From assembly GCA_002104905.1 (NCBI GenBank), contig MCFE01000032.1, forward strand, positions 154,244 to 218,243: DNA of 64,000 nucleotides, written 5' to 3'. Below the pieces are notes generated by a model. That model searched no databases, was not told where the DNA came from, and saw only the letters and a program-made list of their open reading frames with translations. Positions 8,929-45,023 of this stretch are shown one piece after another. The position numbers and the translations under genes were made by a program. The first letter of the stretch is position 1, and every line of letters starts with the position of its first letter. The stretch is from Basidiobolus meristosporus CBS 931.73. Its lineage: Eukaryota; Fungi; Basidiobolomycota.

Positions 8929-9030
8929 CACACTTCGCATGTTTACCACCGAAGGCCGAATCTCTTGAATGCCATCCAACTGTCAAATATAGTTAGGATA
9001 AATGAGAATACGTCATTCCAAAATTGGTCA

Positions 9031-9240: not shown

Positions 9241-9375
9241 CCATGATGCGGCCATTAAAGTGTCTCTCTCATTTAATAAATATATGTATGTATATTCTAG
9301 GAGTGAGAATGGTTTGTACTAATAGATGGTGCTATACATTTAACGAGGAGTTTAAAGATGAATGAGTGCGTTTGG

Positions 9376-12895: not shown

Positions 12896-13094
12896 GATAT
12901 AAGGTGTAGGTCATGGGCCTGGGGCTATGAAAGTATATTAATTGCAGGGATAAGGCTTTGTGATATGTTATGAAATAATGATGAATTACCTTCAGCTCCA
13001 TACACATGCACTACAAATCCACTTAAACTGGGGCTTATGTGCTTATCCACTCTCTGCCTAAGTCTATTATCAAGTGGATTGTAGCTTAAGTAGT

Positions 13095-16320: not shown

Positions 16321-16509
16321 CACTTGTCAGGATCAAGCCTGGCAATGAATGGAAAACTGCCTTCAGAACAAGATATGGTCACTTTGAGTATAAAGTTACG
16401 CCATTTGGCCTCACAAATGCCCCAGCTGTCTTTCAACACCGGATGAATAACATATCCTGGGAGTACCTTGACCAATTTTTGGTTATCTACCTTGATGATA
16501 CCCTAATCT
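16321..16509 (+). mobile_element. Ty3/gypsy reverse transcriptase fragment (host of copia B)
   Basis: [36 protein letters not shown]...YLDD. Confidence 0.88.
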
Positions 16510-19500
16510 TGTTGTAAGAGTCTTGGAGATATTGGAAGTGATTGTGAGGACAAGTAGATTATGTGGTTTTCACTTAATGATTTATTGAATGTAAAAGTAG
16601 TATTTATACTTTTACCTGGTCTTGGCATTACAAACATGTAGAATAGGCTAAGGAAGGTCCCAAGAACATGTGTGCAAAGTTTGGGGCTGTTTGGACAACT
16701 TTGAGAATTTTCATGTTCTGGGTACCTGGTGTTTTGGCAAAAATATTCTAAGTAAATCCCGACAAGGAATTTGGTCAGTATTCTCTAGGATTTGAAGATA
16801 ATGATCTAAGTGACTAAGTTAGGTGAATATTTAGGTGGAAATACAAATTTTTACAACACTCCCACTCAGCTAAATGCTCATACTGACTAGTCCTAATTTT
16901 GACCTAAGATATTCAAACTTGTCTCTAGCTAATGGTTTGGTAAATAGGTGTGCAATCATTTCATCTGTAGGACAGTAAGCTAAGCTAACTAAGTTATTCT
17001 CTATAGCTTCACATATGAAATGATATCTAATATCTATGTGCTTGGTTCTAGCATGAAAAGTTGGATTTCTACCTAATTGTATACATCCTTGATTATCTTG
17101 AAATAAAGTAATAGGCGTTTTTTGACATAGGCCTAAATCTGTAAACAGCTTTCTTAACCTCATTGCTTCTTTTGTAGCTTCACAGGCTGCCATATACTCT
17201 GCTTCTGTGGTAGAAAGTGCTACGGTTGGTTGCTTTCTTGAATTCCATGAAATTGCTCCTTGACAGTAAAGAAAGGTGTATCCTGTGGTGGATCTTCTGT
17301 CATCTAAATTTTGTTCCCAATCTGCATCAGAGTATCCCACAAGATCCTGTTCTGAATCCTTATAAGTGTATCTTAAGCAGATATCAGCAGTTCCTTTTAG
17401 GTATCTAAATATCCGCTTAACTGCTGCAACATGATCAGATCCATAGTTCTGATTATGTTGGCTGACAACTCTCACTGAATATGAGATATCTGGACGTGTT
17501 CCTAGCATGATATACATCAGACTGCTGACCATAGATTGATAAGGAAAGTCAGGGCTTCCAGATGGCACCAAGCTCTCTTGATTTGGTTGAGTTTTGGACC
17601 AAGTTAAGGTTTGTCTACATTGGGGTAACTGCCGGTTTACAGTCTTCCATTTGGTACTTCTTTAGTATATCTTGAATATACTTGGATTGACTTAGGGTGA
17701 TAGTCTGGGTACTTCTGTCTAAGGAGAACTTAATCCCTAAGTAGTAACTAAGTTCTCATAGATCGGACATCTTGAACTCCTTAGATAGGCTGGATTTAGT
17801 CTCTTCCAATGTTTCTAGGCTATTGGTGGCTATAGTAAGATCATCCACATATAGAGCTAATAGAACTGGATTTGCTCTATCTGGCTTATAGTATATACTA
17901 TAGTCAGCATTAGTCCTTTTAAAACTCAAAGATTCCAAATAAAAATCTATCTTGCAATTCCAGGCTCTTGGTGATTGTTTGAGACCATATAGTGACTTTT
18001 TAAGCTTGCAGACCAAATGGGAGTTATCTTGGTCAACAAACCCATCAGGCTGGTCCATATACACATCCTCATCAAGTTCTCCATTCAAAAATGCAGTATT
18101 TACATCCATTCAATGAATAAAGAACTTGTATTTGGCTGCAATAGCCAATATTAATCTGATGGAATTAAACTTGGCTACCGGTGCAAAGGTCTCAGTAGAG
18201 TCAAGTCCTTTTGTTTGAGAGTATCCTTTGGCTACAAGTCTTGCTTTGTATCTTTCAATTGTACCATCAGCCTTGTATTTTGTCTTGAAGACCCATCTGC
18301 ATCCAATTGATTTTTGGTTGATTGGTAATTTAACCAAATCTCAAGTCTGATTTTCCATTAGGGCCTGATATTCCTCAGTCATTGCAGATCTCCAAAACTT
18401 TGTCTGAGGGCTATTTAGGGCCTCTTTTACAGTCTGGGGTTCATCAATATGGACTAATTAGGCATAGGCTAAGTTTGTACCTTCATTGATATAGTAATTT
18501 GGGCTATTTCTTGTCCAATTGGATCTCCGGGCATTTGGTACTGGAATGATCACTTCTGGGATATTCCTGGGCACTGATTCTGGCTGAACTACGGTTTTAG
18601 AGTTCTCTGGAGTGAAAAAATTCTCATTGTTTTGCTCTGATTCAATCCTGACAATTGGTGGACTTGAGATCAAATTTTAGTCATCATCTGATGTCATTTT
18701 TTGTGAAAATTTTAAATTTTCATAAATAACACATCCCTGGACTTGATCAGCTTCTTTGCTTTGGTATTGTAGAGTCTGTATGCCTTACTCTCATTGCAGT
18801 AGCCCAAAAATATGCATTTTACACTTTTTGGCCCAAATTTTGACTGATTTCCGGCCAGTTTTTTGGCATATGCTGTACACCCAAATATGCTTAGATGTTC
18901 TGCACTTGGTCTGTATCCATACCATGCTTCAAATGGAGTAGAATCACAAAGTATTCTGTTATAACTCCTATTTTTAAGGTATGCAGCTGTGGCAACTGAT
19001 TCCACCCAAAAATCATAGGATAATTTTTGATCATGGATCATAGATCTTGCCATATCAATTATTGACCTGTGAGCACGTTCTGCTACTCCATTTTGCTGTG
19101 GGGAGTATGGTACAGTAGTCTCTTGCTTTATCCCATGAATTTTGCAGAAGTGGATGAAGAGTTTTGAGGTATATTCTCCACCATTGTCAGAGCATATTTT
19201 CCTGATTTTTTCACCAGTTTCTCTCTCCACCATGGCTTTAAACTCCTTGAGCTTAGACAGAGCTTCTTCCTTTCTCTCCATGTAGTAGACCCATGTGTAT
19301 CTTGTATACTCATCAATAAAAGTGATTAAATACTTCATCCCATCTAAGGATAAATTTGTATAGGTCCACACAGATCTGAGTGCATCAGATCTAATTTTTT
19401 CTTAGTTTTGATTAACCCAGAGCTCTTGAATGGTTGTCTGGCTTGTTTCCCATATATGCAGGCTTCACAGTGCTCCAAATTAGCTGGGGGATCAATTTTC

Positions 19501-21133
19501 ACTCCAGAAATTAGCTGATCTTTGATCATCTTGCGCAAATAATCATCATTGATGTGCCCAAATCTCCTGTGCCAAAGCATTGGTGCTTCTTCATTTAAGT
19601 TACTTATATTGGCTTCCAGATATGATGGAATATAAGTCAACTTGTATAGATTCTGATCTCTGATGCCCAAAGCAATATGGGCACCATTTCAATCAGTGAT
19701 CCTGCATCCAGAATTGTCAAAACTGAAACTGAGTCCTTCTGCCGTGGCCTTGCTTACAGAGAGTAGGTTCTTGGCTACTTCTGGTAGATGGAGTACTTCT
19801 TTAAAGGTCAGTGTATGGCTTCCTTCACTGCTTCTAAGGTTTACTTGGATCCTTCCTTCTCCCACTGCATGAAGTGTCCTATTGTCACCCATGAAAACCT
19901 TCTTAATTGGAATTTCTTGATATTGGGTAAAAAGTTCTTTTTGGTGTGTAAAGTGTTGAGAAGCTCCAGAGTCAATATGCCACATCTGAGAATCCTTGTT
20001 TGTGGTCATATTTAGTGCAGATATGAATAGTCTATTTTCAGTTGTTGCAGCATTTCCATATTCAGGCTTCTTTTGCTGATAATATCTCTTTTTGAGGCAC
20101 TAGTCTGATGTGTGTCCTTTCCTTTTGCAGTAGTTGCAAAATAGGTTGCTGTTGCCTTTGTAGGGTCTTGGGTACCTCCTTTGTTGGCTATCATTGCTTA
20201 TTAAAGCATTTTCTTCTTCCTTCTTATTGGCGCTTGATTTTCTTAATTCTTCATCCAGGAGCCTTCCATATACATAATTTAAGGTCAAATCTTCAGTTCT
20301 GGACTCTAGGGCTGATACAAGGACCTGAAACTCATCTGTCAGACTATTCAGGATGGTAACTATCACATCCTCATTAGTAGTTGGTACTCCCACAGGTTCC
20401 ATCTCATCTACCTGCAGGGTAATTCTGTTAATTTGATTTTTCATTTCTTCTCCTGGCAGCATCTTTGTAGTAAAGAATTTTCATCTCAGATACATCTTCT
20501 TGGCAGCTGAACATGACTGGTCAGTGTCTTCTAATGCTTTCCAGGCATTCTTTGCCGTTTTTGCTCTTGAGCATTGAATTAGCAATTTGTCCTTGACATT
20601 AAGACAAATGCAATTAAAGGCACTTTGTTCTTTCTTCTGGTACTTCGAGGCTTCCTCTCCCACGTTTTTAGGAGGGCATTCTTCTCCCATGACAGTATCC
20701 CAAAGGCCTCTTTCTTGTAGCAGCATCTTCATCTTCACCTTCCACACTTGGTAGTTAGATCCATCCAACTTTTCAGCAGAGGGAAAAATTCCAGTAATAG
20801 CAGTAGTAGACGTTGCAGAGAGTAACAGCTTGTGGCTCACAACCTGTTGTAAGAGTCTTGGAGATATTGGAAGTGATTGGGAGGACAAGTAGATTATGTG
20901 GTTTTCACTTAATGATTTATTGAATGTAAAAGTAGTATTTATACTTTTACCTGATCTTGGCATTACAAACACGTAGAATAGGTTAAGGAAGGTCCCAAGA
21001 ACATGTGTGCAAAGTTTAGGGCTGTTTGGACAACTTTGAGAATTTTCATGTTTTGGGTACCTGGTATTTTGGCAAAAATATTCTAAGTAAATCCCGACAA
21101 GGAATTTGGTCAGCATTCTATAGGATATAAAGG
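16510..21133 (-). mobile_element. Ty1/copia element B, near full length, decayed
   Basis: 3' LTR 16510-16858 with PPT TGAGTGGGAG; 5' LTR 20845-21133 lacks ~60 bp at its outer end. Order gag-PR (WHIDSGA)-INT (SDNGGEY, TVPYSPQQNGVAER)-RT (ALYVDD)-RH (GYSDADW); frameshifts present. Confidence 0.95.
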
Positions 21134-22050
21134 CCTCCAATCCTGTGACACATGTAATTGTGCAAAATCTGCTAGACACCAGCCATTTTGACTTCTTCAG
21201 CCCTTGCCAATTCCTGACCAGCAATGGAAGTCACTTTCAATGGACTTCATCATCAACCTCCCAGAATCCAGCCAATTCAATTCAGTCCTGGTAGTGGCAG
21301 ATAGACTCACAGAGATGGCTCACATCCTTCCCTGCTCCAAGAATATAGACATCAAGGAGACTGCCCACCTAGTAATCAAGAGCATTTTCTAGCTCCATGC
21401 AATCCCAAGTGACATTGTATCTGATAGAGGACCACAGTTCATACCAACATTCTGAAAACATTTCATGCAATATCTTGGTGTGCAAGTCAAGCTCTCAACC
21501 ACTTTTCATCCCCAGTTGGATGGTCAGACAGAGAGAATTAAGCAGATCCTTGAACAATACCTCTGGTGTTATATCACATATCAGCAAGACAACTAGACCC
21601 AGCTGCTACCACATGCAGAATTTGCCTACAACAACTCATGTCATAGTGCAACTGGTCTCACTCCATTCTATGCAAATTATGGTTTTCATCTGCAATTCAA
21701 TATTCAGATCCCAATAAACCCTATGAGCCTCCCTGCAGCTCAACATACATCAGCAATTCTAGAAATCCAAGAAACACTCAAGAGAGAACTATCCTTTGCC
21801 CATGAGGGGTACAAGAAGTTTGCAGACAACAAATGGCAGCCTAGCCCCATGCTTAATGAAAGTGATTCAGTATGGCTCTTGAGAAGAAACAATGTTACCA
21901 GCCACCCTTGTGATAAATTACAGTACAAGAAACTTGGGCCATTCAAGATCAAGAAGAAACTTAGTCCAATTATATACCCACCACAGTTGCCACCAAGTAT
22001 GAAGGTTCATGAAACATTCCATGTATCCCTCCTAGAACTATTCCATGAAG
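21134..22050 (+). mobile_element. Ty3/gypsy integrase fragment, chromovirus-like, decayed
   Basis: PIPDQQWKSLSMDFIINLP, VVADRLTEMAH, KLGPFKI...TFHVSLLE; cut by the element X terminus at 22051, before any chromodomain. Confidence 0.85.
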
Positions 22051-23665
22051 CCCTATGAAAAATTATTTTAATGTTCTATCAAAAGGCTGTCAAAAATTTA
22101 AAGTCCTCTGACTAAGAGGTACTAATCCTGTCAGGACACTGTCCATAGACTGTTGAAAAATAATTGCACCCCAGATTTTACAAAAAACTTGGCCAAACTT
22201 TTCATCACAACAATATATAAGTGGCTTTTGATTGGTACCCTGCCAATTTGCTCACTTTCTGATCCAGAACACTCTATCACCTCCTATGTTTGTGTTCATT
22301 CATTGGCTATTGCCTTTTTTTCACACTCCTTACTTCCTGACTCAACCATTTATCTTACTTTGCATGTGTACAAATTGATTTATTTCTGTTGAAGCTTTTA
22401 TTGTACCTGAATTACCAATTATATTGACCTACACAAGTCCCTATACCCTACACTAACATTAGGTGGAGCCCCACACTCAACAAGTAACTCCATTAAAATC
22501 ACCACCTAATAAGTATTTCTGCTGTAATACTCTGGTTTCACAACTTTGGCAAGAACCCAACAACTTTATGCCACTGTTCATTCATTGGTTCCCACATGTC
22601 CTGGTCTTAAGCTGGCACTGCAAGGTCTATCACCTCATCTGCCAGTCCTTGCAATAAATCCCTGCAATATACAAGTGCATTTTCTTGAGCACTGCTCTTG
22701 AAGAGGTTTTGCAACCTCTTGGTACGCCCATTAATGTTCCAACATTCCAATGAAGGCATTGTGATAGTCTTTAGAGTTCTTGATGTTGTAGCCTTGTCTG
22801 TCAGTAGGATCTCCACTCTGTCAACAATGGAAGACATAGAGGCTGTGGTAGATAAATTGCCTTTTTCTGCAAACTCATCTACCTTGCTGGAGTGTAGCTC
22901 CACTGGCTGTGCTTTCAACTCTTGTGAAAACTGCTGCTTTCTTGTAGGTAATTCCTCTTGGGTATGATGGGATTTAGTCTGTTCTGGGATTGCGGCATAA
23001 ATTGGCAAGAACTGCAGCTTTTTTGCATGCTTCCCTGTCTCAGGCTTGGGTAGACTTCCTTCCCTTTACCCATTCCTTTGTCACTGCCAGGTCTTTTGCT
23101 GCTACTTTGTCTGAGTGCTTCTTGTAATGAACTACATGTCCTCCTAGATAAATTCTGCTATGATGCATCTGTTTTAGCCTGCTTGTCCCTTGCTGGCACT
23201 CTTCAGGCAACCTGATGTTTCTTCCCCACTTGTTTTGAGCTCTCAACTGTAGCTGAGATGGGCTCCTGTAAAAGCCACTGGTTTTTACCACTGCCAGGTC
23301 CTACACTGCTACTCTGACTGAGTGCTTCTTGATTGGCACTACACTTTTTCCTTGATAAATGTAGTGCTGGTGCATCTGTGTCTACCTGTTTGTCACTAAT
23401 TGGGACTCATCCAGCTACCTGACATCTCTTTGATGCTTGTCTGGAGCTTTCAGCCCTGCTTGCAACAGGCTCTTGAGGAAGCCACTGGTTTTAAGCCATG
23501 GCACCCTTGTTCTTCTGCCTTTGATATTTCTGCTATTCTTAAGACACTTTCTTAGCATACCAATGAAGGTCCAAAAAACTGTTTGCCTGTTCAAATCCAG
23601 GATAATGCTCATAGAACAAGTCAAGTGCATTCTTCTTGGCTTCAAGTTCCTGATGGTCACATGGT
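22051..23665 (-). mobile_element. CACTA/EnSpm-like element X: left terminus and decayed second ORF
   Basis: Starts CCCTATGAAAAATTATTT; homologous to ~59000-60600; minus-strand ORF remnants 22607-23008, 23040-23291 and 23415-23714. Confidence 0.7.
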
Positions 23666-24275
23666 ATCCAACACTTCTCAGGTGTTTTGTATGTGGGGTG
23701 TTCATTGGGTGCAATAGCCTCTGGTAAAAGCTTGCTAGAATACTTGGGTTCTGTCTCTAATCTGATGTGATGGGAATAAAGCCACAAGCTTGTCAAGGGA
23801 AAGCTTTTGAGCTACAATCCCCAACTTAGTTGGCATCTCAACAAAAGTATGTGCTGGGTTCAGCATCCTTTGAGATGATAATGAACTAAAGCTTCCAAGG
23901 TCAAAACAACTCTAAACTCCACCAGCAGGGACTTGATAAGAATGCAGCTCTGGTCAATAATTACAAAGACAGAAAAGTATCTTTGCCTGTACAAGAACAA
24001 ACTTGCAAAAGAATCAAATATAACAAAAGATACCTACTCTGAGTATTCCTCACAAGTAGTGCCTCCAAGGTTGGTTGGCTGTCAGCAAGGTTTTCTGGGA
24101 GTGTCTGATGGCCAGGGGTTAGAGGTTCAGGTAGCAGCAGGTAGCAGTGATCACACTAACTAAAAAGTTGGTATATTGATAAAAGGGATGATGATTTATT
24201 GTTGAGGGAGTGCCTCCCTTATATACTTTTCTCACTGGCTAAGTGATTACTAATCATGGTGTTCCAGAAGGTTCC
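23666..24275 (-). mobile_element. Partial copy of the 1.07-kb LTR (family R4), inverted
   Basis: Reverse-complement homology to ~37900-38510 and ~62300-62890. Confidence 0.8.
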
Positions 24276-25445
24276 ATCTTACCACAGAGAGAATGTACAG
24301 ATGTCAGCATGCAATTGCAGCAAAGTTGGCAAGCTATAAGCCATTGGCTGCAATATAGAATCAATTGGAAACTGGAGGTACTTAAGATAGAGGGTATCTA
24401 TTGGAGAAAAAGCTTTCCACTGGGAGCAATGCATTGCTTTTAAACAATATTCTTACACTAATGACCAAGTTGTACATGGGGCATTTAAAGTTAAATGAGC
24501 CCTTCAAGATACTGGAGAAGCTTAAGAGAATTGGCAAGATATTACAGAGTATCAGTTACCCTAAGTACTTCTCACAGGTTCCAATTAATATCCATATCCA
24601 TATACAACAATACAAATACAAAGACTGGATGAGCTGGATTAATAATTATGCAAGTGGTGTTCTGAAGCCATTCCTACCAAAAATACATTGGAAGCATTGG
24701 GATTCATATCTGGACATTGTAGGGATATTTATCCTGAAGTGGATCACCAATGCCAACTTGACACATCTACAGCTGTTGTGTGATGAGTTTGTAATGGGAT
24801 TTAAGCAGCTATACTACAAACATAAAGCTGAACACATAGATGTCTGCCGCTTGTGTATCCATTCTCTACTCCATCTTGCTTGGTATATGGAGAATATTGG
24901 GCCTTTCTTCACCTTTTGGAAGTTTCCTATGGTGCAGATGTGTTGGGAGATAGGAAGACAAGTCAAGTTGCAGGTACTACCATATCCCAATCTCATCAAG
25001 AATATTACCTTCAAGTCTGTCATGGATGTGATTAGTAGGCACATGGAGGACAGCCAGGCCAAGTTGGAAAATATTGAGGACAGATGTGCACATGGAGACA
25101 CCCATTCCTATGGCAACAAGAAGCTAAGCAGCCCCAATGCATGGATAATTTGTTAAGTAATGCAAAGTTGGGTTAGGTGCTGCAAGCAACTAATTTTATT
25201 AGGAAAATTCTACCAAGATATGCCAGATTTCTCATGGTCACAAGCCAACGTCTACACCATTCAATATAGAATTCACACAAACAAGAGCCAGAGTGCCCCA
25301 ATGGAAAAAACAGTCAAGTTGCAGATGCTACCATATTTCAATCTCATCAATAATATTACCTTTGAGTCTGTTACGGATGTGTTGAATTGGTTCATGTAGG
25401 ACAGCTAGAAAGTGCTGGAAAATAGAGAGGACAGATGTGCATATG
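24276..25445 (+). pseudogene. CACTA/EnSpm-like transposase fragment (DUF4218-like region)
   Basis: ORF 24401-25156: F..LYY......CRLCIHSLLHLAWYMENIGP...W.FPM...C..I...VK....PY.NL. Segment 24955-25095 is repeated at 25308-25445. Confidence 0.75.
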
Positions 25446-27870: not shown

Positions 27871-30800
27871 TGTTGTAAAAATTTGTATTTCCACCTTAAT
27901 ATTCACCTAACTTAGTCACTTAGATCATTACCTTTATATCCTATAGAATGCTGACCAAATTCCTTGTCGGGATTTACTTAGAATATTTTTGCCAAAATAC
28001 CAGGTACCCAAAACATGAAAATTCTCAAAGTTGTCCAAACAGCCCCAAACTTTGCACACATGTTCTTGGGACCTTCCTTAACCAATTCTATGTGTTTGTA
28101 ATGCCAAGATCAGGTAAAAGTATAAATACTACTTTTACATTCAATAAATCATTAAGTGAAAACCACATAATCTACTTGTCCTGCCAATCACTTCCAATAT
28201 CTCCAAGACTCTTACAACAGGTTATGTGCCCCAAGCTGTCACTCTCTGTAATGTCTACTACAGCTATTACTGGAATCTTTCCCTCTGCAGAGAAGTTGGA
28301 TGGATCTAACTACCAAGTGTGGAAGGTAAAGATGAAGATGCTGCTACAAGAAAGAGGCCTTTGGGATACTGTCATGGGAGAAGAATGCCCCCCTAAAAAC
28401 GTGGGAGAGGAAGCCTTGAAGTACCAGAAGAAAGAACAAAGTGCCTTTAACTGCATTTGCCTTAATGTTAAGGACAAATTGCTAATTCAATGCTCAAGAG
28501 CAAAAACAGCAAAGAATGCCTGGAAAGCATTAGAAGACACCTACCAGTCATGTTCAGCTGCTAAGAAAATGTATCTGAGATGAAAATTCTTTACTATAAA
28601 GATGCTGCCAGGAGAAGAAATGAAAAATCTAATTAACAGAATTACCCTGCTGGTCAATGAGATGGAATCTGTGGGCGTACCAACTACTGATGAGGATGTG
28701 ATAGTTACCATCCTGAATAGCCTGACAGACAGGTTTCAGGGTCTTGTATCAGCCCTAGAGTCCAGAACTGAAGATTTGACCTTAAGGTACATATATGGAA
28801 GGCTCCTGGATGAAGAATTAAGAAAATAAAGCGCAAATAAGAAGGAAGAAGAAAATGCTTTAATAAGCAATGATAACCAACAAAGGAGGTACCCAAAACC
28901 CTACAAAGGCAACAGCAACCTGTATTGTAACTACTACAAAAGGAAAGGACACACATCCAACCAGTGTCTCAAAAAGAAAGATAATCAGCAAAAAATGCCT
29001 GAATATGGAAATGCTGCAACAAATGAAGATAGATTATAGACTTGTTCCGTTGGATAGTGCCACATTGAGCCATGAGTGCCAAATAATGCCATAGTGTGCC
29101 AAGAAGGCTAAGGGAGCCTATACTTGGCCACAGGGTGTGAAACATAGCTCTGCATCTTCATGCAAAGTGGCCCCTGCATTTTGCCCATTGTGTCGGAGAA
29201 AATCCACTTTCTGACCTTTTTCTTGGATCAATGTTGTGCAGGATGTGAAAGAGCACAGAAAGACTGAAGACATGCATCTGGTACTCAATACCCATGGCAC
29301 TCTGAATCTAGCTCCTGTGGATTGTATCATGTCACAAAAATGCATGGCACTATCTTGGTCCACCGGTACTATCTGGCACTATATTTAAATATTAGCCCTA
29401 AAGTAAAACCTATATAAAGCACTTATCGTGCCAGATAGTACCGGTGGACCAAGATAGTGCCATGCATTTTTGTGACATGATACAATCCACAGGAGCTAGA
29501 TTCAGAGTGCCATGGTTATTGAGTGCCAGATGCATGTCTCAGTTCTTCTGTGCCCTTTCACATCCTGCACAACAATGATCCAGAAAAAAAGGTCAAAAAA
29601 TGGATTTTCTCCAGCACAATGGGTGAATCTCAGGGGCTGCTTTGCATGAAAATGAAGATTAATGTTTCACACTCTGCGGCCAAGTTTAGGTCTGCTATGC
29701 CTTTCTGGCACTCAATGGCACTATTTGGCACTTGTGGCTCAATGTGGCACCATCCAATGGAACAAGTCTTATTCATATCTGCACTAAATATGACCACAAA
29801 CAAGGATTTGCAGACATGGTTTATTGACTCTGGAACATCTCAACACTTTACACACCAAAAAGGACTCTTTACCCAATATCAAGAAATTCCAATTAAGAAG
29901 GTTTTCATGGGTGACAATAGGACACTTGATGCAGTGGGAGAAGGAACTATCCAAGTAAACCTAAGAAGCAGTGAAGGAAGCCATACACTGACTCTCAAAG
30001 AAGTACTCTATGTACCAGAAATAGCCAAGAACCTACTATCTGTAAGCAAGACCACTGCAGAAGGACTCAGTTTCAGCTTTGACAATTCTGGATGCAAGAT
30101 CACTAATCAAAATGGTGCCCATATTGCTTTGGGTATCAGAGATCAGAATCTATACAAGTTGACTTATATTCCATCATATTTGGAAGGCAATATAAGTAAA
30201 TTAAATGAAGAAACAACAATGCTTTGGCACAGGAGATTTGGGCACATCAATTTTGATTATTTATGCAAAATGATCAAAGATCAGCTAATTTCCAGAGTAA
30301 AAATTGATCCCCCAGCTAATTTGGAGCACTGTGAAGCCTGCATATATGGGAAACAAGCCAGACAACCGTTCAAGAGCTCTGGGTTAATCAAAATAAGAAA
30401 AAATTAGATCTGATGCACTCAGATCTGTGTGGACCTATGCAAAATATATCCTTAGGTGGGATGAAGTATTTAATCACTTTTATTGATGATTATACAAGAT
30501 ACACATGGGTCTACTTCATGGAGAGAAAGGAAGAAGTTCTGTCTAAGTTCAGGGAGTTTAAAGCCATGGTGGAGAGAGAAACTGGTGAAAAAATCAAGAA
30601 AATATGCTCTGACAATGGTGGACAGAGAAACTGGTGAAAAAATAAAGAAAATATGCTCTGACTGTAGTGGGGAATACACCTCAAAACTCTTCATCTACTT
30701 CTGCAAAATTCATGGGATAAAGCAAGAGACTACTGTATCATACCCCCCACAGAAAAATGGAGTAGCAAAACGTGCTAACAGATCAATAATTGATATGGCA

Positions 30801-33341
30801 AGATCTATGATCAATGATCAAAAATTATCCTATGATTTCTGGGCGGAATCAGTTGCCACTGCTGTTTATCTTAAAAATAGGAGTTATAACAGAATACTTT
30901 GCAATTCTACTCCATTTGAAGCATGGTATGGATACAGACAAAGTGCAGAACATCTAAGAATATTTGGGTGTACAGCATGTGCCAAGTAACTGCCTGGAAA
31001 TCATTCAAGACTTGAGTCACAAAGTGTAAAATGCATATTTTTGGGCTACTGCAATGTGAGCAAAGCAAACAGACTATACAATACCAGAGCAACAAAGCTA
31101 ATCAAGTCCAGGGATGTGTTGTTTGATGAAAATTCAAAATTTTCACAAAAAATGCCTTCAGATGATGCCAAAAATCTGATCTTAAATCCACCAACTGTCA
31201 GGATTGAATCAGAACAAAACAATGATATTTTTTCACTCCAGAGGACTCTAAAATCCTGGTTCAGCCAGAATCAGTGCTCAGGAATATCCCAGAAGTGATC
31301 ATTCCAGTATCAAATGCCCGGAGATCCAATTGGACAAGAAATAGCCCAACTTACTATATCAATGAGGGTACAAACTTAGCCTATGCCCATTCAGTCAATA
31401 TTGATGAGCCCCAGACTGTAAAAGAGGCCTCAAATAGCCCTCAGACAAAGTTTTGGAGATCTGCAATAACTGAGGAATATCAGGCCCTGATGGAAAATCA
31501 ACCTGGGACTTAGTCAAATTACCAATCAACCAAAAATCAAGATATGCAGATGCAGATGGGTCTTCAACACAAAATACAACGCTAATAGTACAATTGAAAG
31601 ATACTAAGCAAGACTTGTAGCCAAAGAATGCTTTCAAACAAAAGGACCTGACTATACTGCAACCTTTGCACTGGTAGCCAAGTTTAATTCCATCAGATTA
31701 ATATTGGCTATTGCAGCCAAATATAAGTTTTTTATTCATCAAATGGATGTAAAAGCTGCATTTTTGAATGGAGAACTTGATGAGGATGTGAATATGGACC
31801 AGTCTGATGGGTTTGTTGACCAAGATAGCCCCCATTTGGTCTGCAAGCTTAAAAAGTCACTATATGGTCTCAAACAATCACCAAGAGCCTGGAATTGCAA
31901 GATAGATTCTTATTGGGAATCTTCAAGTTTCAAAAGGAGTAATGCTGACTATAGTATATACTATAAGCCATATAGAACAAATCCAGTTCTATTAGCTCTA
32001 TATGTGGATGATCTTATTATAGCCACCAATAACCTAGAAACATTGAAAGAGACTAAATCCAGCCTATCTAAAGAGCTCAAGATGTCCAAACAAGGAGAAC
32101 TTAATTACTACTTAGGGATTAAGTTCTTCATAGACAGAAGTACCCAGACTATCACCCTAAGCCAATCCAAGTATATTCAAGATATACTAAAGAAGTACCA
32201 AATGGAAGACTGTAAACTGGCAGCTACCCCAATGGAGACAAACCTTAACTTGGTCAAAACTCAGCCAAATCAAGAGAGCTTGGTGCCATCTGAAAGCCCT
32301 GACTTTCCTTATCAATCAGAGATTGGCAGTCTGATGTATATTATGCTAGGAACACGTCCAGATATCTCATATTCAGTGGGAGTTGTCAGCCAACATAATC
32401 AAAACTATGGATCTGATCACATTGCAGCAGTTAAGCAGATTTTTAGATACCTAAAAGGAACTGCTGATATCTGCTTAAGATACACTTATAAGGATTCAGA
32501 ACAGGATCTTGTGGGATACTCTGATGCTGATTGGGGACAAAAACTAGAAGACAGAAGATCCACCACAGGATACACCTTTCTTTACTGTAAAGGAGCAATT
32601 TCATGGAATTCAAGAAAGCAACCAACCGTAGCACTTTCCACCACAGAGGCAGAGTATATGACTGCCTGTGAAGCTACAAAAGAAGCAATGTGGTTAAGAA
32701 AACTTTATACAGATTTAGGCCTATGTCAAAAAACGCCTATTACTTTATTTCAGGATAATCAAGGATGTATACAATTAGGTAGAAATTCAACTTTTCATGC
32801 TAGAACCAAGCACATAGATATTAGACATCATTTCATATGTGAAGCTATAGAGAATAACTTAGTTAGCTTGGCTTACTGTCCTACAGATGAAAAGATTGCA
32901 GACATATTTACCAAACCATTAGCTTGAGAGAAGTCTGAATATCTTAGGTCAAAATTAGGACTAGTCAGTATGAACATTTAGCTGAGTGGGAGTGTTGTAA
33001 TAATTTGTATTTCCATCTAAATATTCACCTAGCTTAGTCACTTAGATCATTACCTTCATATCCTATAGAATATTGACCAAATTCCTTGTTGGGATTTACT
33101 TAGAAAATTTTTGCCAAAATACCAGGTACCCAGAACATGAAAATTCTCAAAGTTGTCCAAACAGCCCCAAACTTTGCACACATGTTCTTGGGACCTTCCT
33201 TAACCTATTCTACGTGTTTGTAATGCCAAGATCAGGTAAAAGTATAAATACTACTTTTACATTCAATAAATCATTAACTGAAAACCACATAATGTACTTG
33301 TTCTCCCAATCACTTCCAATATCTCCAAGACTTTTACAACA
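27871..33341 (+). mobile_element. Ty1/copia element C, full length, inactivated
   Basis: LTRs 27871-28219 and 32993-33341 (349 bp, ~17 substitutions by hand count); PBS GGTTATGTGCCC; PPT TGAGTGGGAG; TSD CAATG/CAACG. RT-RH ORF 31704-32927; MITE at 29038; 49-bp duplication at 30566. Confidence 0.96.
29038..29769. mobile_element. Palindromic (foldback) MITE, copy 2
   Basis: Arms 29038-29379 / 29428-29769 (342 bp each); 48-bp spacer is the reverse complement of the copy-1 spacer; TSD TAT relative to the empty site GACTATTCATATC (~15395). Confidence 0.94.
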
Positions 33342-33346
33342 CAACG

Positions 33347-34477
33347 GACATGTGTCTAAATGTGCAATTTGGTGAGTTCTGGTAGTTTTGCTCTGAAGCA
33401 TGCACATTTATCTCACATGTGTTGACTTGATGCAGGGCACTTTTATTAGGGGTGTTGGTGTAGAATGGACTGACATGTGCTGGCATGCTGAATTTGCAGG
33501 GGATGGTAAGGAATCCAGCAAGGCATGCTGGCACAATCTGGACGCAGTTACTTGCAGTCATTATTTTTTCTCTTAAAGTTCACCTTTTGATTCCTCAAGG
33601 TACACACTCACCCTCAGTTCAATACCTTAGCACTATTGCCTTGATGAGTCCTGTGTGTATTGCTCTTGGAAGCCACTTAGCTCTACTAATATATCATATA
33701 GTACATCAGTCATTTGAGGCAAAAACACATTCAAGATCTCCTTGGTTCCCAATGTTGGGGCACAAACAAATGCATCTGGTCTGTACTGTGCAAATTGCAT
33801 GTGGAATTGTTTGCATGTGGCTTCCTCATCAAATCCCCTCACTGTCAGCTCATTCCTGATTTCAATACTTGTCTTTTTATGCATCTTGTTACATACATCT
33901 GCTGTCATCTTCATGTAGAACTCATGGCACAGCATTCTACTCAGCTTCTTCTATCTCTGTCAGCTCTCTGAGGTATCCAGTTCTGCTAGATTAATGAGTA
34001 AGGTCTACATATCTGTATGAAGACTCATCATAGACATGTGGGCCATACTATAATCATTTGGTACAAACTCAAACTGATCTGACATTGATTTTTCCAGGCC
34101 AGACCACACTTGTAAGTTGGGAGATGAGTTTTCTCTGGGTTGTACTCAGGATGTGTTGAGTCTTGGTATTGGGACCATAGTGGCAGATTTGGATAGATTT
34201 ATGAGTAAATCATCAATAAAGTCACCAAGTCATTGTTTGAGAATTTTTTTTGCAACTTAATGATGGGATTCTTGGCAATTGATCAAGATTCAATCATGAT
34301 GCATGAAAAATCAGATAAATTAAGCTGATTGCACCAATCTAATTCTAATCACCTCCACACAATCACATACCTGTTTGGATATGACTTACTCTTCTGCATG
34401 GTTTTTTCTCATCAATCCCACCACTACCACTGGATTTCTGCTTGACACGTCAGAGGAGATCTATACCAGGTACTGTG
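33347..34477 (-). mobile_element. Element H internal fragment with decayed long ORF
   Basis: One minus-strand frame over most of the fragment, with stops mostly explicable as CGA/CAA/CAG C->T changes; homologous to 50060-50740, 44310-44830 and 57624-57980; resumes in frame at 42018. Confidence 0.7.
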
Positions 34478-34890
34478 TGTGGGTTATTACTGACTGTACT
34501 TGGTAGTTGGGAGAGCTATAGATCAAGTCACTACCACTTGGCTCAGAATAGCTTTTGATAGAAGGTTGCAAGATAATAAAGTCTTATGTTCATCACATTA
34601 AATATTTGTCCCTTTCCACTTGTCTCAGTTGAATATACATATATCGCACTGAGAGGGGCTTAGGTGATGAACAATGTGTTATAAAATAGGGGTGTGAACA
34701 CCTTCCTGCTATGGCAAGCATTCTGACTAGGTAAGGACAGAAATAGGAGGAATGTTGTATGGGGGACTCATAGAGAGGATACTGGAGAGACTTTGGGTAG
34801 GACTCTGGGGGAGCTCTTGGGCAAAAAGTTGGTATTAAATTTAGTACTCATATATCCCAGAGGTTAAGAGGGAGCTTTGTCATTGAGGTA

Positions 34891-36576
34891 CTATGGCAAA
34901 CTTGCTTCTCCATAGTCAATTTTGTTTACAGAGCATGGGGAGTCACCATAGTACCATTGATGGTTGTCACTTGCATGGGGATTGCAGGCGTGTACCAGAA
35001 ACCACTCAGCAGCAGAGTGGGGTGCAGCTTGGGTTATTTGAGAGATGTTTTCCATGGAGCCAAACAATTGGCAAACCATAAGGCTCTGGGTGAGCTCCTT
35101 GGGGGGATTGGAGTACAAGCATCAATGCAATAGCGCAATAATGTCTTGCTTCTTTATCTGGCAAATGTTGTTGAGGCTTTGGTGCTCTTTTAAGAGGGCA
35201 TACACTTGGTTGGCAGTCATTAGATATCAATGACAGATTCTTGCTTCTTCTGAGACATATTGTAGTACTTCTATGGAGACTGTGGTGCAATCAAGGCGTT
35301 TTGGCACTTGGCTCATGGTTTCTACAGAGTCAGTGGTGGTTTCTTTGGTTTCCTGGAGTGGGACTTTGTACTGGCTCCTGAGTTGTCCTGTGGTGAACCA
35401 TTGTAATAGTTGTAACACAGCAATTTGGTGGATTGCATGGGTCAACTGGCCAGTATATTTAATCTGCTCACATATCTTCTCCAGGATGCTTCCTTCTTGG
35501 GAATGCAGCTTTACATGTTTGCAGATCTCTCAGAGGAGTCCTTTGAATAGGAGTTCTACCTCTTGTGCTCTTGCAGCTTGTACCAGGTCTGCATATACCT
35601 CAACAACTGTAGCACCTCTCAATGGTAAGTATGCAACAAAATAGGGGGGCTCTTGAAGCCTGGTGAGGGTACAACAGTTGATTCCTTGCATCTTATGTCT
35701 GACTATGTCCACTATGGATATGGGAATCAATGCAGCATCCCTCTCCTTGAAGAGCAAGGAAGCTCCTCTCAGGAGATATACGGTCTTTGTGGGTAGTGTC
35801 TTTATACTTTGTATTGGCGTGAGTAACTTGTCTTGTCCCTCTCTGATTGTTTCTTGTATTATTGTGACTGCTCCAGCAAATGCCTCTTCATAGGTGGCTC
35901 TTGTCACACTTAATGATTGTGTCAAATCTCTCAGCACCTGCAGGTTGGACTTGTTTTTGATATTGTCTTGATTCTTGCTACTGGGGGGAGTATTGCCAGT
36001 TCCAGGTGAAACTATTTCCTTTGGCACTTTCCATATGCATCTTTTTGTTCTCCCTTTTGGGCAAACTTCCTTGCACATATCATTTGTACCTATATTAACT
36101 AAATCTTCTCTAATAAACCTTGTATGTATCCTGTGTCTTTCTCTATCCTTGTCCTGATAACTGTTTAAGCATGCTTTGGTCTTGGTGATGATTGGTAGAT
36201 CATCATGATATAGCTTCAGATGGGCTGGCACTATGTTGCTGACTGTCTTGTTGTTCAGGGTAATGGTGTATTTTGGTCCATGGTCTAAACTGATAACAGT
36301 GCAATGGCCAATCCATTAGGGTGTAAATTGTGGGCAAAACTTGAGGCCTGCAACAGTTTGGTCATACCACACCTTATTGCCTGGTTTCCATTTGTGTCTT
36401 GTTAGTATCTTGCTTTTGGGTGGTGGGAGAGGGTGTTTGTTAGCATTTTTGAATACCTTTATGTATAGGTGAGCAATATAGTGTATCAACCTTTCTACAT
36501 AGTTGCTCTGTGTTGTCAGGGGGGCACCTTTCATTGTCAATCCAGCTTCTTCATGCCACTTGGGCCTTGTCCACAT
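34891..36576 (-). pseudogene. G2 integrase C-terminus (GPY/F module) fused in frame to a ~440-aa unknown extension
   Basis: Track ORFs 36316-36576, 35530-36231, 35227-35445 and 34891-35118 share one frame, separated only by in-frame stops (one TAA, three TGA) with no frameshift. Confidence 0.75.
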
Positions 36577-37469
36577 AGAATTACATATGGGGAGAAACCT
36601 ATTGCTTTATTTGGTATGGTGCACATTGCTAGGAGTGTCAGTGAGAGCAGCTTGGCCCATGATTGGGGAAGTTCACAGTGAGGCTTCTCTAGTATGAGGC
36701 AACATGTCTGGTTCATCCTCCTGCGAAGTCCATTAGTCTGGGGGTAATGTGTGGCCATGAGGACCTATTTCATGCCCATCTATTTGCCCAGGTAGGTCAT
36801 GGTTTTGCTCAGGAAGGAACCGCTATTGTTGGACAGGAGTATCTGAGGATATCCATGCCAGCTGATGAGGTGTTCTAGAATGAGAAGGGTGGCTGTCTAC
36901 TGATCTTTATTTTGGATGGCTTGGGCTCCTACCCACTTTGCAAAATAATGGTAGCATTTATTATGTATTGTTCTCTTTTTTTGTTTTCATAAGCAGGCCA
37001 ACAAAGTCAATCCCTACTTAGTGCAAGGGTAGGTCAACTGGTATTGGTGCAGTGGTCCCTATCTTCTGACTCCGGTTGAGTCTTTTGCAAGTGGTGCATC
37101 TTTGTAATGTATTTGTAACATTGGTCATCATTGTTTTCCAAAAAAATGTCTTTCATAACAGTTTATACATTGTTAGGGGGTTAGCATGCCCAAATGACAT
37201 ATGCCTTTCTTGTATGATATCTTTGCGGGCAGCTAGCAGGGAACCTTGGCTCTGAACTGTCCTTGAAGGAACCATATGTGATTTTCTTATACTTTGTACT
37301 GACACTGTTTCCTTTCAAATTCTCTCTTCTGTTTGTTTATAAAATTTATTTAGGATACTTCCCCTTCTTTTTAAAGCATATTACATCCTTGAAATCATCA
37401 CTGATGCATATTTGGCAAATGGGATAGCAACCAAGGAAGTCTGCATCCTGATGTTTCTTGCCAGCATGG

Positions 37470-38539
37470 TGTAGTGGGGTCACAATGACACTCACCAACA
37501 GATGTACTCATTCCCATATTTTCTACTTCACTATTTCTCTATTATACATATTTTAGTTTTATCCCATTTGTATTACTTGACAAGTACTATCCCATAAGCT
37601 GGCTGACTATCACACCTGCTTACCTTATTGCATAAGTTGTCTCTCACCTTATGTAAGATTACTAGCTGTAAGTGCTTCTATATTGGGCAAGGACCCATAC
37701 CAGCACCTATGACACATGGTTAACCTGTGTTACCATCCCTACTGTTTCCATACCATAAATGGTATCCCTATGCTACACAGATCTCAGAGTACTGATTCCT
37801 GATTGATTGGATGTGCTTTGCCTCTTAGAACCTTCTGGCACCTACTTAGAGTACTCTTAGCTCATTCCAATGTCATTAAGATTTCTATTGATATCTGGAA
37901 CCTTCTGGAACATCATGATTATTATTTGCTTTGCCAGTGAGAAAAGTATATACAGGAGGCAATCCCTCAACAGTATATCATCATCCCTTTTATCCATATA
38001 CCAACTTGTTAATTAGTGTGATCACTGCTACCTGCTTCTACCTGAACTTCCAACCACAGACCACAGGATACTCCCAGGAAACCACGCTGACAGCCAATAG
38101 ACCTTGGAGGCACTACTTGTGAGGAATACCCAGAGTAGGTATCTTTTATTACATTTGATTCTTTCCCAAGTTTGTTCATGTACAGGCAAAGATACTTCTC
38201 TGTCTTTGTAACTATTGTCCACAGCTGCATTCTTATCAAGTCCCTGCTGGTGGATATTACAGTTGTTTTGACTTTGAAGCTTTAGTACATTGTCATCTCA
38301 AAGGATGTTGAGCCCAGCACATACTTTTGCTAAGACACCAACCAAGTTGGGGATTGTAGCTCAGTAGTTTTCCCTTGACAAGCTTGTGGCTTTAATCCCC
38401 TTCACTTTAGTGTAGAGACAAAACCCAGGTATTTCTAGCAAGCTTTTGCTGGAGGTTATTGCACCCATTGAGCACCCCACACACAAAACACTTCAGAAGT
38501 GTTGGACATATCTCTCCCTTGGACTTATACACCACAACA
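37470..38539 (+). mobile_element. 1.07-kb solo LTR (family R4) inserted in G2 pol
   Basis: TGTAGTGGGG...CACAACA; 4-bp TSD ATGG/GTGG (one transition); colinear with 61853-62923. Confidence 0.85.
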
Positions 38540-41500
38540 GTGGTGAATTATCTCAAAGTTGTATTGCTGTAGTCAAAGGGCCCAACATGCTATATGGCTG
38601 GTGAAGTCTTTAGTTTTCATCAGCCAGACCAATGTGCTGTGGTCTTTTACTGTTGTGAATTGGCAACCATGTTTGTATATATGGATTTGCTTAATTGCAC
38701 AAACAACAGCCAGATATTTTATCTTAGCAATAGGGTAGTCACATTTGTGTTTGTTTAGCAAATGGCTCACATAACCAACTAAGTGGAATTAACCAGGTTG
38801 GTGGCAATGTCCCAGTAGAGTGCCTATACCAGTGAGGCTTCCAATACAGTAACTAAAAAATCTCACATCTCAATTGCAAAGAAATAACACTGAGGGTGAC
38901 ATCAGGAAATGTTTCAGCTGATCAAATGCTTCCTTTTGAGGCTCCAACCACATGAAACACTGGCCTTCTGATGTTAATTTATACAGGGGGGCTGCTATTA
39001 TTGCAAAGTTTTTGATAAAGCAGCAATAGTAACCTGCTAATCCTTGAAACCCAAGCACTGCATTGATATTCTTTGGAGCAGGTGTATTGTGAATGGCCTT
39101 TAGTAGTGAAGTAGATGGGTATATCCTATCTAGCAAGATCTTGTGGCCCAGGAACAAATATTTTGTGTACAAGAAGTGGCACTTCTTGGGATGTAGTTTG
39201 AGTTGGTTCCTAAGGAGGGGTGTCAGGATATATTGCACACTATGTATATGTTCTTCTACATCCAGGGAATATATCATGATGTTGTCTAGATACACAATAG
39301 TGCATTCCTGTAGAAAGTTCCCAAGCACCTTATCAATCATCCTTTGTGATATAGCAGGGGCATTGCACATGCCAAAGGGCAGTCACTTCCAAATGTATTA
39401 TCCAAACAATGTGATGAAAGCAGTTTTGGGTTGATCTTCTGGGGCTACTTCTACTTGCCAATACCCAGAGATTAAGTCAAGAGAGCCAAAATATTTAGCT
39501 AGGACTAATCTGTCCAAGAGGTTGTCTATTTGCAGTAGTAGATACATGTCCTTCCAGGAGACAGTGTTCAATTTTTGGTAGTCAATGCAAAAATGTTGCT
39601 TTGCATCCTTCTTTGGGACTATTACTATAGGGGAGGCCCACAGAGAGTTGCTCTCTGCCATGATGTTGTCCTTCAATAAAGTTTCCACTGTCTCTCTAGT
39701 ATATTCTGTGACAATTTTTAGTCCCTATAGGCTTTTTGCTTGATGGGGTATTTGTTTGTAAGGTGGATATGGTGATATACCCTGAGTATATGACCAATTA
39801 CCTGGCTCTTATAGAATACTTGAGCAAGAGGGTGCATTTCTTTCAGGAACTTGTCTTGTAGAGTAGGTAGTAGACTGGGGTCCACATCCTGCTTGGGGAG
39901 CTCCTCTTGTGGTTCCTTACCTGTAGTTGGTCCTTGTTTGTTTCCATCAACTTCCTCTACATTTACAATGGAACTCCTCTAGGCAGTACTACCATGTGTT
40001 GTCCATTGCTAACCACTAAGCATTTCACATTTTGTGCTTCCAATTTTGGCAGTGTCCATACTTTAGGGATAAAGATTCCTGTCAGATGGTCAAATACCTT
40101 TGTTGCGGTTATCATTCTTTTGTACGTTGAATACACTATTGGTGTCTCTGATGGGATCACTGTCTCACTGGTAGATGGTATTTTTATCACCTCTTGTGTG
40201 ATGATCGGAGACTGCGATGGTTTCACCTATTTGATTGTCACATTATTGCTACACACCTTGTTCTCATTGGTGATATGAATCAGTGGGATACTCTTGGTAT
40301 CCCACTTGAGCTCAGATGCACCGTAGAGTATATCCATCTTATGTTGGATAAACCAACTATTCCCAATAAGTAGGTTGTTAGCTGCAATGGGTAGGACCAC
40401 AACATCTTGTTGTATAGGCAGGTTACCTAGCCAGATAGGGAAATTAGGTGCCATGTCTACTGTTGTGTCTAGTTGGTCATTTGCAAGCTGTACTCAAATG
40501 GTGTCATTGAGGACCATATCTAATTTTAGAGGTTTTGGTAATGACTCTGACATGATCAATGTAGAGGATCCTGTGCCAATAAGGGCAAGAATCTCCTTAT
40601 TCTGTATACAAACCTTTACATATGTGCCCTAATTTGGCTTTTGTAGGACTGTCTGGTTGAGATCCAGGGTGTTATCTCCTTCAATCCCACTGGTTCCTTC
40701 ACCTGCTCTCTAGAAGCATGATGTCTATACTTCTTCCTCACTTGGACTGTTCTGACGAGAGGGCTCAAACTGATTGAGTCTGTTGGCCTCCTGGCAAGGG
40801 ACTCTGTATTTGACACCTTCTTCTCCTTTGTTGCCAGTACTGGTTCTTGTCCATACCACTTTTCACATGTGCGGGCTCTGTGACTTATTTCTCCGCATAC
40901 ATAGCATGGAAACTGTTGCTGTGGTTGTTCCATCTGTTGGGTCAGGGCTTGTATTTGGGCCTTTTGACCTACAACAGCTTCCCAAAATGTATTGCCTTCT
41001 TTGGGGGCTTCTTGGACATTATTGATTGAGAGTTCTTGGACCTCTTGTTGTAATTCCTCTGACTCACAGTTACTTGGGAAGGTAATTTTTCCTATCTGAC
41101 AGGGGATCCCCGTTCTTCTATTGCCCATATGACTATGGGGTAGCTCTTGTAGCATTTTACATCCCTGTTGCTCTTTGGATACCCTGCGTCTTATTTTGTT
41201 GTCTAAGCCCATGATTTAATACCTCATGAGCTGTTGTTTGACCATTTTGTCCTTTGGGAGACATCAAGCAAGCTGCAGATATAGCTCTGTGTAGTCTTTG
41301 TAGCTCTCACTACTCCTTTTTGTGAGGACAGTAGAAGGGCATCATAGTGATATCCCTTGGCATAGAGAAATCATGCCATGTAGGCTTCTTCCAGTACATG
41401 CCAGTCACCTTTAATTGCATCTTCCATTCCATAATACCATCACCATGCTGACCCTTCCATACTTCTTGCAAACTCCCTTACTTTCCTATTGTGGTCCCAT

Positions 41501-42017
41501 CCTGCATCAACTGCAACTCTCTCAAACTTGTTGAACCGCTCAAGGGCTCTCTCTCTCTTTCCTTTGTATGCTCTCAGCTTGATTTTAGTAGTCATGACCT
41601 CACTTGTGCATAATTCCGCAGAGATGGTACCAAATCTGTGGGTTATTACTGAGTGTACCTGGTAGTTGGGAGAGCTTGTAGGTCAAGTTAGTACCACTTG
41701 GCACAAAATAGCTTCCAATAGAAGGTAGCAAGGTAATAATGACTTATATTGATTATGCTATGAAGCTCATCCCCTTGCACTTATCTCAGTTGGATTTATA
41801 TATATCTCACTGAGAGAGGCTTGAGTAATAGACAATGCGTTACAAAATAGGGGTGTGAGCACCTTCCTACTATGGTAATTGTCTAACTAGGTAAAGACAG
41901 GAATAGGAGGAAGAAAGTATGTGGGATTCAAAGGGAGGATGCTGGAGAGACTTTAGGTAGGACTCTGGAGGAGCTCTTGGGCAAAGAGTGGGTATTACAT
42001 TTTGTACTCACACTGTG

Positions 42018-42330
42018 GACCATCTGCCCCATTCTACTCAAGGAGATCCCTTGTGAAGCATCTCTGCTACCACAAGAACTATTGCCCTACAAGGTTTCAT
42101 CCACTATTCATAGTAACAGAAGTCCTAGAAGCTTTCATTCCCAGCTGACAGCAATGGAGAGCCACCTTGCAGAGGGTATGAATGACTTAGAGTCTACTTG
42201 GAATACTAGGTTCAGGAACCTCAATAGACTTCCATATCCCAGAGTGTTTGGCAACAGGTTTCATATCAGGAGTATTTTGGACATCATCCCAGTCAGAATA
42301 AAGAGAACTTCTAGAGAGTAGAGACACTTT
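42018..42330 (-). mobile_element. Element H fragment (right flank of G2)
   Basis: Joins 34477 across the CTGTG TSD to match the uninterrupted sequence at ~57965-58040; homologous to 44830-45000. Confidence 0.7.
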
Positions 42331-43375: not shown

Positions 43376-45000
43376 AGAATTATTCCATTGTACCGTGCAG
43401 AGCACGCAGCACAATCTGCAATCTTTAAGAGCAATCAGGTGCAATATTATAGCAACCAATAGGCAGCATTGCTCTTGGACAGTTTTACACCATGTGGGAC
43501 AATCTTGCACACTATGGCACAATCTGACATGATGAGGTTAGCTCAGATGATTGCACCAACTTGTAATATTTGCATCACACTTGCAATTGGATACTGCTAT
43601 TATGGTAGATACAATCTGGTATTTGGATACGTTTCTTCAATGTAAATGAAAGTAAATGCATCTCACAATATGAACTACACTGATACTTACCATTTGGTAA
43701 CATTCACTCCATTGGACGGCATCTCAGAGGTTAATTGATCCAACAGTATCCTGAAGATGTCAGCCTCCAGTTGGCTCTTTGACCAATCCACAAGCTACCT
43801 GATTTGCCATCAAATATCCCACTTTGCCCATTGAGCAAGTAAATCCTGGATCCTAGTGATGAGATAAGGTGTCATAGCTAGCATGAAACCAATCAGATAT
43901 ATGTAAAATAGATCAAATGGCTGCACTGGTGTTGCAGATGATGTATATATATGCAGGAAGTTTATTTGTATAGGTTATGTGTCAAATGTGAGACAACATT
44001 GATATTGTGTATATCAAGAATTAGTGATCACTGATTTGCAATGGCTTGATTTGGATTGCAAAAAGAATGTGCTGCTTACTTCTTGACAAAATATGGCAAT
44101 TCAATGTCATTGCATCATCTTCTCCTAGGTTTTTTTTCTCACAGGGAAAACTACTGAGGTATTTAGTAGTAATTCACTTTACACACCTAAACTACTTCCT
44201 GGCTGACTATCCCCTTGGCTATTTGTGTATTTGTAGTTGGTATTCTGCCTCCTAGTTGATTAGTGTGAAGCTACAGCTTAGCCATGCTTAATTGCTCTGG
44301 ACAATGCTGCTGCTAGATTAATGAGTAAGGACTATATATCTGTATGAAGGCTCATCATAGACACTTGAGCTATACTAAAATTATTTGGCAAGAACACAAT
44401 CAGATCCATCATCAATTTCTCTGATCAAGACCGTGCTTGTGAGCTTTGTCTGAGTTGTACAAATGATGAGTTGAGACTTGGTATAAGGACAATAGTGATG
44501 GACTTTTACAGTAGTGTATTGGTATCAATCTGGTCTTATATAAAATATCAATGGAAACCAAGGTGAATGTGGAATTTTCCACATATTATGCATGATGCAT
44601 CATGAATTGTATTAACATTTATTGGATCACATCAATTGCAGATTTCCTATTTGATTATAGACTTGTGAGTAAAGCATCAATATAAATACCAGTCATTGTT
44701 TGAGGATGATTTTTGCAACATAATGATGGGATGCATGGCAACTGATGGAGATCCAATCATAATGCATGGAAAATCAATAAATAAAGCTGGTTGTGCTAAA
44801 TTGATTCAAATCACCCAAGCCCAATCACTAAGGTTTCATCCCAACATCCATGGCAACAAAAGTCCTAGAAGCTTTCATTCCAAGCTGATAGCAATGGGGA
44901 GCCATCTTGCAGTGCTTATGAATGACTTAGAGCAAGCTTGGAATACTAGGATTGGAAGCTCCAATCAACTTCCATATCCCAGAGTATTCAGCAACATGTT
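43376..45000 (-). mobile_element. Element H terminal fragment with internal deletions
   Basis: Degenerate terminus AGAATTATTCCATT at 43376; homologous in order to 13805-14228, 48940-49480, 33980-34350 and 42080-42260. Confidence 0.65.
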
Positions 45001-45023
45001 CCATACCAATGTAACTCTACTAA

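Follow-up and report, generated by a model that had tools for sequence, protein, structure and literature searches.

What does the integrase frame of a fungal Ty3/gypsy retrotransposon encode once it has passed the end of the recognised integrase, and did that additional region belong to the element, to its whole family, or to neither? The question is raised by the decayed element here termed G2, which lies on the minus strand of the window (the whole stretch of 64,000 nucleotides that was analysed). A preliminary description of the locus had noted an integrase frame that runs on well beyond its GPY/F module, and had interpreted the extension as a captured or novel targeting, anti-silencing or accessory domain that was maintained as coding sequence during the active life of the element. 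The features of G2, listed from its 5' to its 3' end, are as follows; the extension, or tail, occupies the interval between the GPY/F module and the 3' LTR.

41637..42012, minus strand: 5' LTR of G2, 376 bp (TG...CA), with the target-site duplication CACAG at 42013-42017
40619..41595, minus strand: gag, split across frames (ATG at 41595), whose zinc knuckle, CX2CX4HX4C (CYVCGEISHRARTC), is read from the ORF translations
39966..40493, minus strand: protease region, assigned by position and by an LLIGNSWF-type motif alone (Pfam gave no match)
38873..39724, minus strand: reverse transcriptase (Pfam RVT_1, E 5.5e-15 and 1.6e-4)
38576..38788, minus strand: RNase H (Pfam RT_RNaseH, E 5.8e-13)
37467..38541, strand not assigned: nested dispersed repeat of about 1075 bp, lying between RNase H and integrase and flanked by TGGTG
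37021..37314, minus strand: integrase zinc-binding (HHCC) domain (Pfam Integrase_H2C2, E 4.1e-5 and 0.2 on two halves)
36540..37006, minus strand: integrase catalytic core, heavily broken, with ...SNNSGSF... and ...YHPQTNG... legible in short pieces that give no Pfam rve match
36199..36381, minus strand: GPY/F (SH3-like) module, read directly, ending in ...HLKLYHDD and interrupted by a TAA at 36318-36316
34478..34852, minus strand: 3' LTR of G2, 375 bp, with the target-site duplication CACAG at 34473-34477

G2 is a complete Ty3/gypsy element (Metaviridae), possessing both LTRs, the CACAG duplication and the series gag, putative PR, RT, RNase H and IN, and is a dead copy. The order of reverse transcriptase, RNase H and integrase along the minus strand, as assigned by Pfam, is that of Ty3/gypsy elements, and the LTRs open with TGTG... 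or TATG... and close with ...CACA. The two LTRs are 82% identical (K2P 0.21, with three gap runs), and the copy is therefore old. The GPY/F module returned no match to its Pfam family (SH3_Tf2-1) because the TAA splits it; no Pfam match to gag was found within G2, and a search of the element against Rfam gave no match. Among annotated proteins, relatives of the reverse transcriptase piece reach at most 41% identity, and none was found for gag.

The nested repeat that separates RNase H from integrase is a separate insertion, foreign to the original G2. Other copies are found in the window at 61850-62925 (87%) and, reversed, at 23667-24276 (88%), and contigs from public sequencing runs display a joint, 37465->38540, that passes across it. 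The depth of such contigs over the repeat (3e5-9e5) is 30-100 times that over G2 (about 1e4), which places the repeat among the most abundant in the genome. A stretch within it at 38349-38400 looks tRNA-like; ARAGORN found no tRNA in the repeat, and Rfam returned nothing.

A nest of LTR elements of about 50 kb adjoins an island of host genes at 2784-11210, which encodes Sec1, an alpha/beta hydrolase, an intronless Cu/Zn SOD and Leo1 and has a higher G+C content (0.45-0.48). The SOD protein has exactly one match in the public gene index, on contig MCFE01000032.1 of the fungal assembly GCA_002104905.1 (Basidiobolus meristosporus CBS 931.73, an early-diverging fungus sequenced by the JGI); it locates the window near the end of that contig and bears out the fungal context assumed in the preliminary description. 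A much younger Ty1/copia element at 28000-33341, with LTR pieces that are 96% identical and a pol open for more than 400 codons, lies within about 1.1 kb of the 3' LTR of G2, and related copia copies are found at about 15-21 kb. Direct repeats of 78-86% identity bracket G2 (33983-34313 versus 44310-44776, and 42101-42268 versus 44841-45008) at a spacing of about 10.3-10.5 kb; the target of the G2 insertion may have been an older repeat-bounded element, or such an element may lie next to it. Long open frames on the minus strand at 59428-60300 and 22610-23406 have no Pfam match and display a common pattern (...QEALSQSSS.GPG..KN.WLLQEP...); they look like another repeated coding family. A 256-codon open frame on the plus strand at 24386-25153, also without a Pfam match, lies about 2.3 kb downstream of the end of another gypsy integrase (SH3_Tf2-1, 21597-22055) and might represent, in a different family, a further coding region behind integrase.

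Retranslation of the minus strand from 34888 to 36345 gave the peptide that had been quoted in the preliminary description (KFCPQFTP*WIGHCTV...VPAHLKLYHDD), and bore out its claim of a frame that continues from the GPY/F module for about 1.3 kb, nearly to the 3' LTR. Beyond ...HLKLYHDD, from which no stop separates it, the frame extends for 435 codons (36198..34894) with zero frameshifts, so that the four ORF fragments that had been joined do belong to a single minus-strand frame throughout. It is interrupted at three positions (35532-35530, 35229-35227 and 35124-35122), each of them a TGA, as had also been reported, and is closed by a TAG. The interruptions divide the tail into four pieces:

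35533..36198, minus strand: tail piece A, 222 codons, read by translation
35230..35529, minus strand: tail piece B, 100 codons, between the first and second TGA
35125..35226, minus strand: tail piece C, 34 codons, ending at the third TGA
34894..35121, minus strand: tail piece D, 76 codons, with a His/Cys/Trp-rich end, followed by the TAG at 34893-34891

The gap between that TAG and the start of the 3' LTR at 34852 measures 38 nt, and the tail thus fills the whole space up to the expected position of the polypurine tract.

The openness of this frame bears directly on the possibility that it arose by chance in non-coding sequence at the 3' end of the internal region. Across 34891-36240 the tail frame contains three internal stops and the terminal one, and the other five frames contain 29, 18, 19, 12 and 22. 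For each of 3000 first-order Markov simulations based upon the element's own composition, the least interrupted of three frames was taken; its stops averaged 22.6 and numbered at least 11 in every simulation, as compared with three in the tail. Elsewhere on either strand of the window, an equally open run of 435 codons (three stops or fewer) occurs only in two pol genes of copia type and in one further gypsy pol; the tail is as open as the recognised transposon coding regions of the window, and must therefore have been coding when the G2 copy was inserted. Its openness has also outlasted the divergence of the LTRs to a K2P of 0.21. A chance frame would agree with the missing homologs and the poor fold predictions described below, and with nothing else; it is ruled out by the stop statistics and is of negligible probability, the last in order among the rival explanations. 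The tail once encoded protein as part of G2, in the reading frame of the integrase.

The depletion of CpG to which the preliminary description had pointed is present as well. Over the whole window the ratio of observed to expected CpG is 0.24, accompanied by an excess of TpG (1.34) and CpA (1.31) and by a TpA ratio of 0.79. Since CpG depletion and a TpG/CpA excess occur here without an excess of TpA, the pattern appears to reflect the loss of methylated CpG by deamination and not RIP-type mutation; it reaches its extreme in the gypsy tail, where the CpG ratio falls to 0.08.

Whether the tail is a property of this copy or of its family was addressed with contigs of four public runs, placed upon positions 34470-40400 at 80% likeness. 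Two runs of organism A contributed about 8,900 and 10,600 contigs, and a run bearing a second organism label about 970; the organism A contigs over the stretch number in the thousands and range from 80% to 99% likeness. Summed depth per bin, a crude measure that counts all relatives of at least 80% likeness, was approximately 6,000-15,600 over the tail versus 7,500-19,700 over the integrase, with similar values over the reverse transcriptase. The tail thus reaches about the depth of the integrase and reverse transcriptase, and is a standing component of a family with many copies rather than a private insertion: it is carried family-wide. The preliminary description had let its interpretation depend in part upon other copies keeping the region, and the depth indicates that they do. 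Among the best-supported 12 of 46 indels relative to the G2 copy, none lies in the tail and four lie in the integrase (36974, 36979, 37133 and 37238), and a deletion joint (34781->36043) was found in a single contig. A tail piece of 355 nt under the second organism label aligns without gaps at 82% identity, and the divergence of the tail under that label is similar to that of its integrase and protease pieces.

The tail pieces were searched separately for protein relatives, B through D against Pfam, with B and D also compared with the PDB and subjected to length-limited or narrow searches. Pieces A through D matched no Pfam family, the sole match (AIRC, E 0.21) being at chance level. A PDB sequence search with piece A (plus the integrase end), B and D returned nothing, a match to MreB at E 0.055 again corresponding to chance. 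HMMER, run in full with the 222-residue piece A against 1.84 billion representative proteins (a library that may not include the host assembly's own proteins), gave 0 matches at E<=0.001. No match was obtained in a word-based protein search with a 261-residue tail piece, in metagenome scans with that piece and piece D, or in a viral-contig scan with piece A. For pieces A and B the ESM Atlas gave either no usable match or, at best, a score of 0.81 against unnamed clusters; these scores are low and carry no evidential weight. Within the window, no second copy or paralog of the tail was found by phmmer against all six-frame segments or by blastn and tblastx, and phmmer against the six-frame segments found no similarity between the tail and the rest of the element. 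An account of such a tail was not found in the published literature that was searched. The position that had been taken beforehand, that the tail lies outside described domains, was upheld by the Pfam searches with all four pieces and the PDB searches with A, B and D. As part of the best overall reading of the locus, and judged from its sequence, the tail is probably an orphan, lineage-restricted region, and not a chromodomain, an envelope, an RNase H or another described accessory domain.

These same searches bear upon the idea that the tail was a passenger, that is, a fragment taken once by a master copy from the host's genes or from a different mobile element, and dispensable for transposition. 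Capture of foreign ORFs by LTR retrotransposons is known (PMC5408684, PMC9289625), and the dissimilarity of the tail to the remaining element would agree with such an origin. However, piece A has no relative of any length among the 1.84 billion representative proteins, the frame of Pol has been kept exactly and the space to the LTR filled, and the region reaches full family depth and recurs, at about 82% identity, under the second organism label. With no donor found, the frame exact and the depth full, a passenger is the less likely explanation, and is considered improbable.

The composition of the tail is uneven along its length. Its first residues, to approximately position 87, are hydrophilic and basic, with a net charge of +9 and with 59-86% disorder-prone residues, and piece A beyond that point is of a mixed helix/strand sequence type; the overall pI is 8.3. 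The His/Cys/Trp motif that had been described at the end of the tail can be read in piece D. AlphaFold2 models computed from single sequences reached pLDDT values of 35 (piece A) and 39 (piece D). A membrane-like segment was not found in the tail (the top Kyte-Doolittle mean over 19 residues was 1.21), and no segment resembling a signal peptide was seen in it.

These properties weigh heavily upon the reading in which an endogenous retrovirus-like element carried the tail as its envelope-like gene. Such a gene would be expected ahead of the 3' LTR, where the tail is located, and piece A contains a basic R-T-K-R site. Against those two points stand the lack of any signal peptide-like or membrane-spanning segment, the absence of a Pfam match to an envelope or fusion protein, the fusion of the tail to Pol, and the host itself, which is a walled fungus. 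An envelope is effectively excluded by the lack of a membrane segment, the lack of a Pfam match and the fusion to Pol, and its probability is minute.

Basic tails behind an integrase core are familiar from the Ty1 and Ty5 elements, where they are poorly structured and carry a nuclear-import signal together with a short host-factor-binding motif. They resemble the tail of G2 in being basic and in following the integrase core, but belong to another superfamily (Ty1/copia), are much shorter, and lack a large structured part. Chromoviral chromo-integrases of fungal Ty3/gypsy elements, of the Tf1, MAGGY and Tcn1 type, offer a comparison within the same superfamily: in these, a module fused to the integrase steers integration to chromatin (PMC3248453, PMC2864245). 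As in G2, the accessory module of the chromo-integrases stands behind GPY/F at the C-terminus of the integrase, whereas a chromodomain comprises approximately 50-60 residues and the G2 tail 435. Pieces A through D gave no match to Pfam Chromo at E<=1, and no chromodomain-like motif was recognised in them by eye, so that G2 does not group with the chromoviruses on this feature; the earlier statement that the tail contains neither a chromodomain nor a transmembrane segment agrees with this result and with the hydropathy maximum.

A further comparison is provided by plant elements of Tat lineage III, in which Pol carries a C-terminal RNase H of archaeal type and additional ORFs, enigmatic in function, characterise the lineage (PMC4408406). 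G2 shares with them a Ty3/gypsy Pol lengthened at the C-terminus by a further domain; the Tat elements, however, reside in plants and their addition is an RNase H, whereas G2 resides in a fungus and its tail has no match to RNase H or PMD. The absence of any RNase H family match in pieces A through D sets G2 apart from a Pol of the Tat lineage III type.

Elements with an ORF3 or env gene constitute the last group, and include insect errantiviruses, plant Athila elements with env-like genes, and the ORF3 types of bdelloid rotifers (PMC5408684, PMC13524379). Like G2, they possess several hundred extra codons between integrase and 3' LTR, often without recognisable homologs. In contrast to G2, in which the tail is in frame with Pol and contains no membrane segment, the added coding regions of these elements form ORFs of their own, many of which contain membrane segments or enzyme domains. 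The fusion to Pol, the low hydropathy and the lack of a Pfam match distinguish G2 from envelope-bearing elements of the errantivirus and Athila type, and neither Pfam (pieces A through D) nor the PDB (pieces A, B and D) provided a match that would ally its tail with the enzymatic ORF3 types of bdelloids, such as GDSL esterase, DEDDy exonuclease and dUTPase.

The tail might nevertheless represent a separate ORF3 product, released from Pol by the protease or translated from a message of its own, with a role outside integration such as anti-silencing, RNA binding or particle assembly. Its location between integrase and 3' LTR is the site at which ORF3 or env is found in retrovirus-like elements (PMC5408684), and its length of 435 codons far exceeds that of known integrase tails. 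Yet the G2 copy displays no stop or change of frame on the way from integrase into tail, none of the listed runs in which the stretch occurs is recorded as RNA, and a function of this kind lacks the backing of homology. Such a product is unlikely, and ranks first among the rival explanations, followed by the captured passenger, the envelope-like gene and the chance frame.

With moderate confidence, then, the tail is read as a decayed Pol region of a fungal Ty3/gypsy family, an orphan that was most likely an accessory module attached to the integrase. According to this reading, which argues from position, from sequence character and by analogy with other additions to the end of integrase, the tail formed an in-frame continuation of the integrase, immediately behind GPY/F, within the Pol polyprotein; its basic and probably disordered first 87 or so residues would have served as a linker and as a segment for nuclear import or for contact with DNA or chromatin; and the structured remainder may have served to tether the integration complex, with a host factor or a chromatin state as its anchor. 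Targeting, tethering or nuclear import is regarded as the likeliest function of the tail because it occupies the position of the chromodomain in chromoviruses and because a basic linker leads into a larger, apparently structured part. More specifically, and only tentatively, the tail may be a new lineage-specific domain, fused to the integrase in a Ty3/gypsy clade of early-diverging fungi and without a detectable protein relative, in which a module for targeting or for countering host defence took the place of the chromodomain. The interpretation offered in the preliminary description thus stands in part, insofar as the tail was formerly coding and fused to the integrase (from the frame), is regular in a multi-copy family (from the depth) and falls outside described domains (from Pfam and the PDB).

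The broader interest of the region derives from what such additions do elsewhere. Additions to the C-terminus of integrase, whether a chromodomain or the tails of Ty1 and Ty5, set the landing sites of retrotransposons, and extra ORFs represent steps towards retrovirus-like lifestyles. The tail is at present a well-supported anatomical oddity; an orphan region of 435 codons carried across a whole fungal gypsy family would, if the reading is true, constitute a new case of an addition to integrase and a candidate module for tethering or counter-defence.
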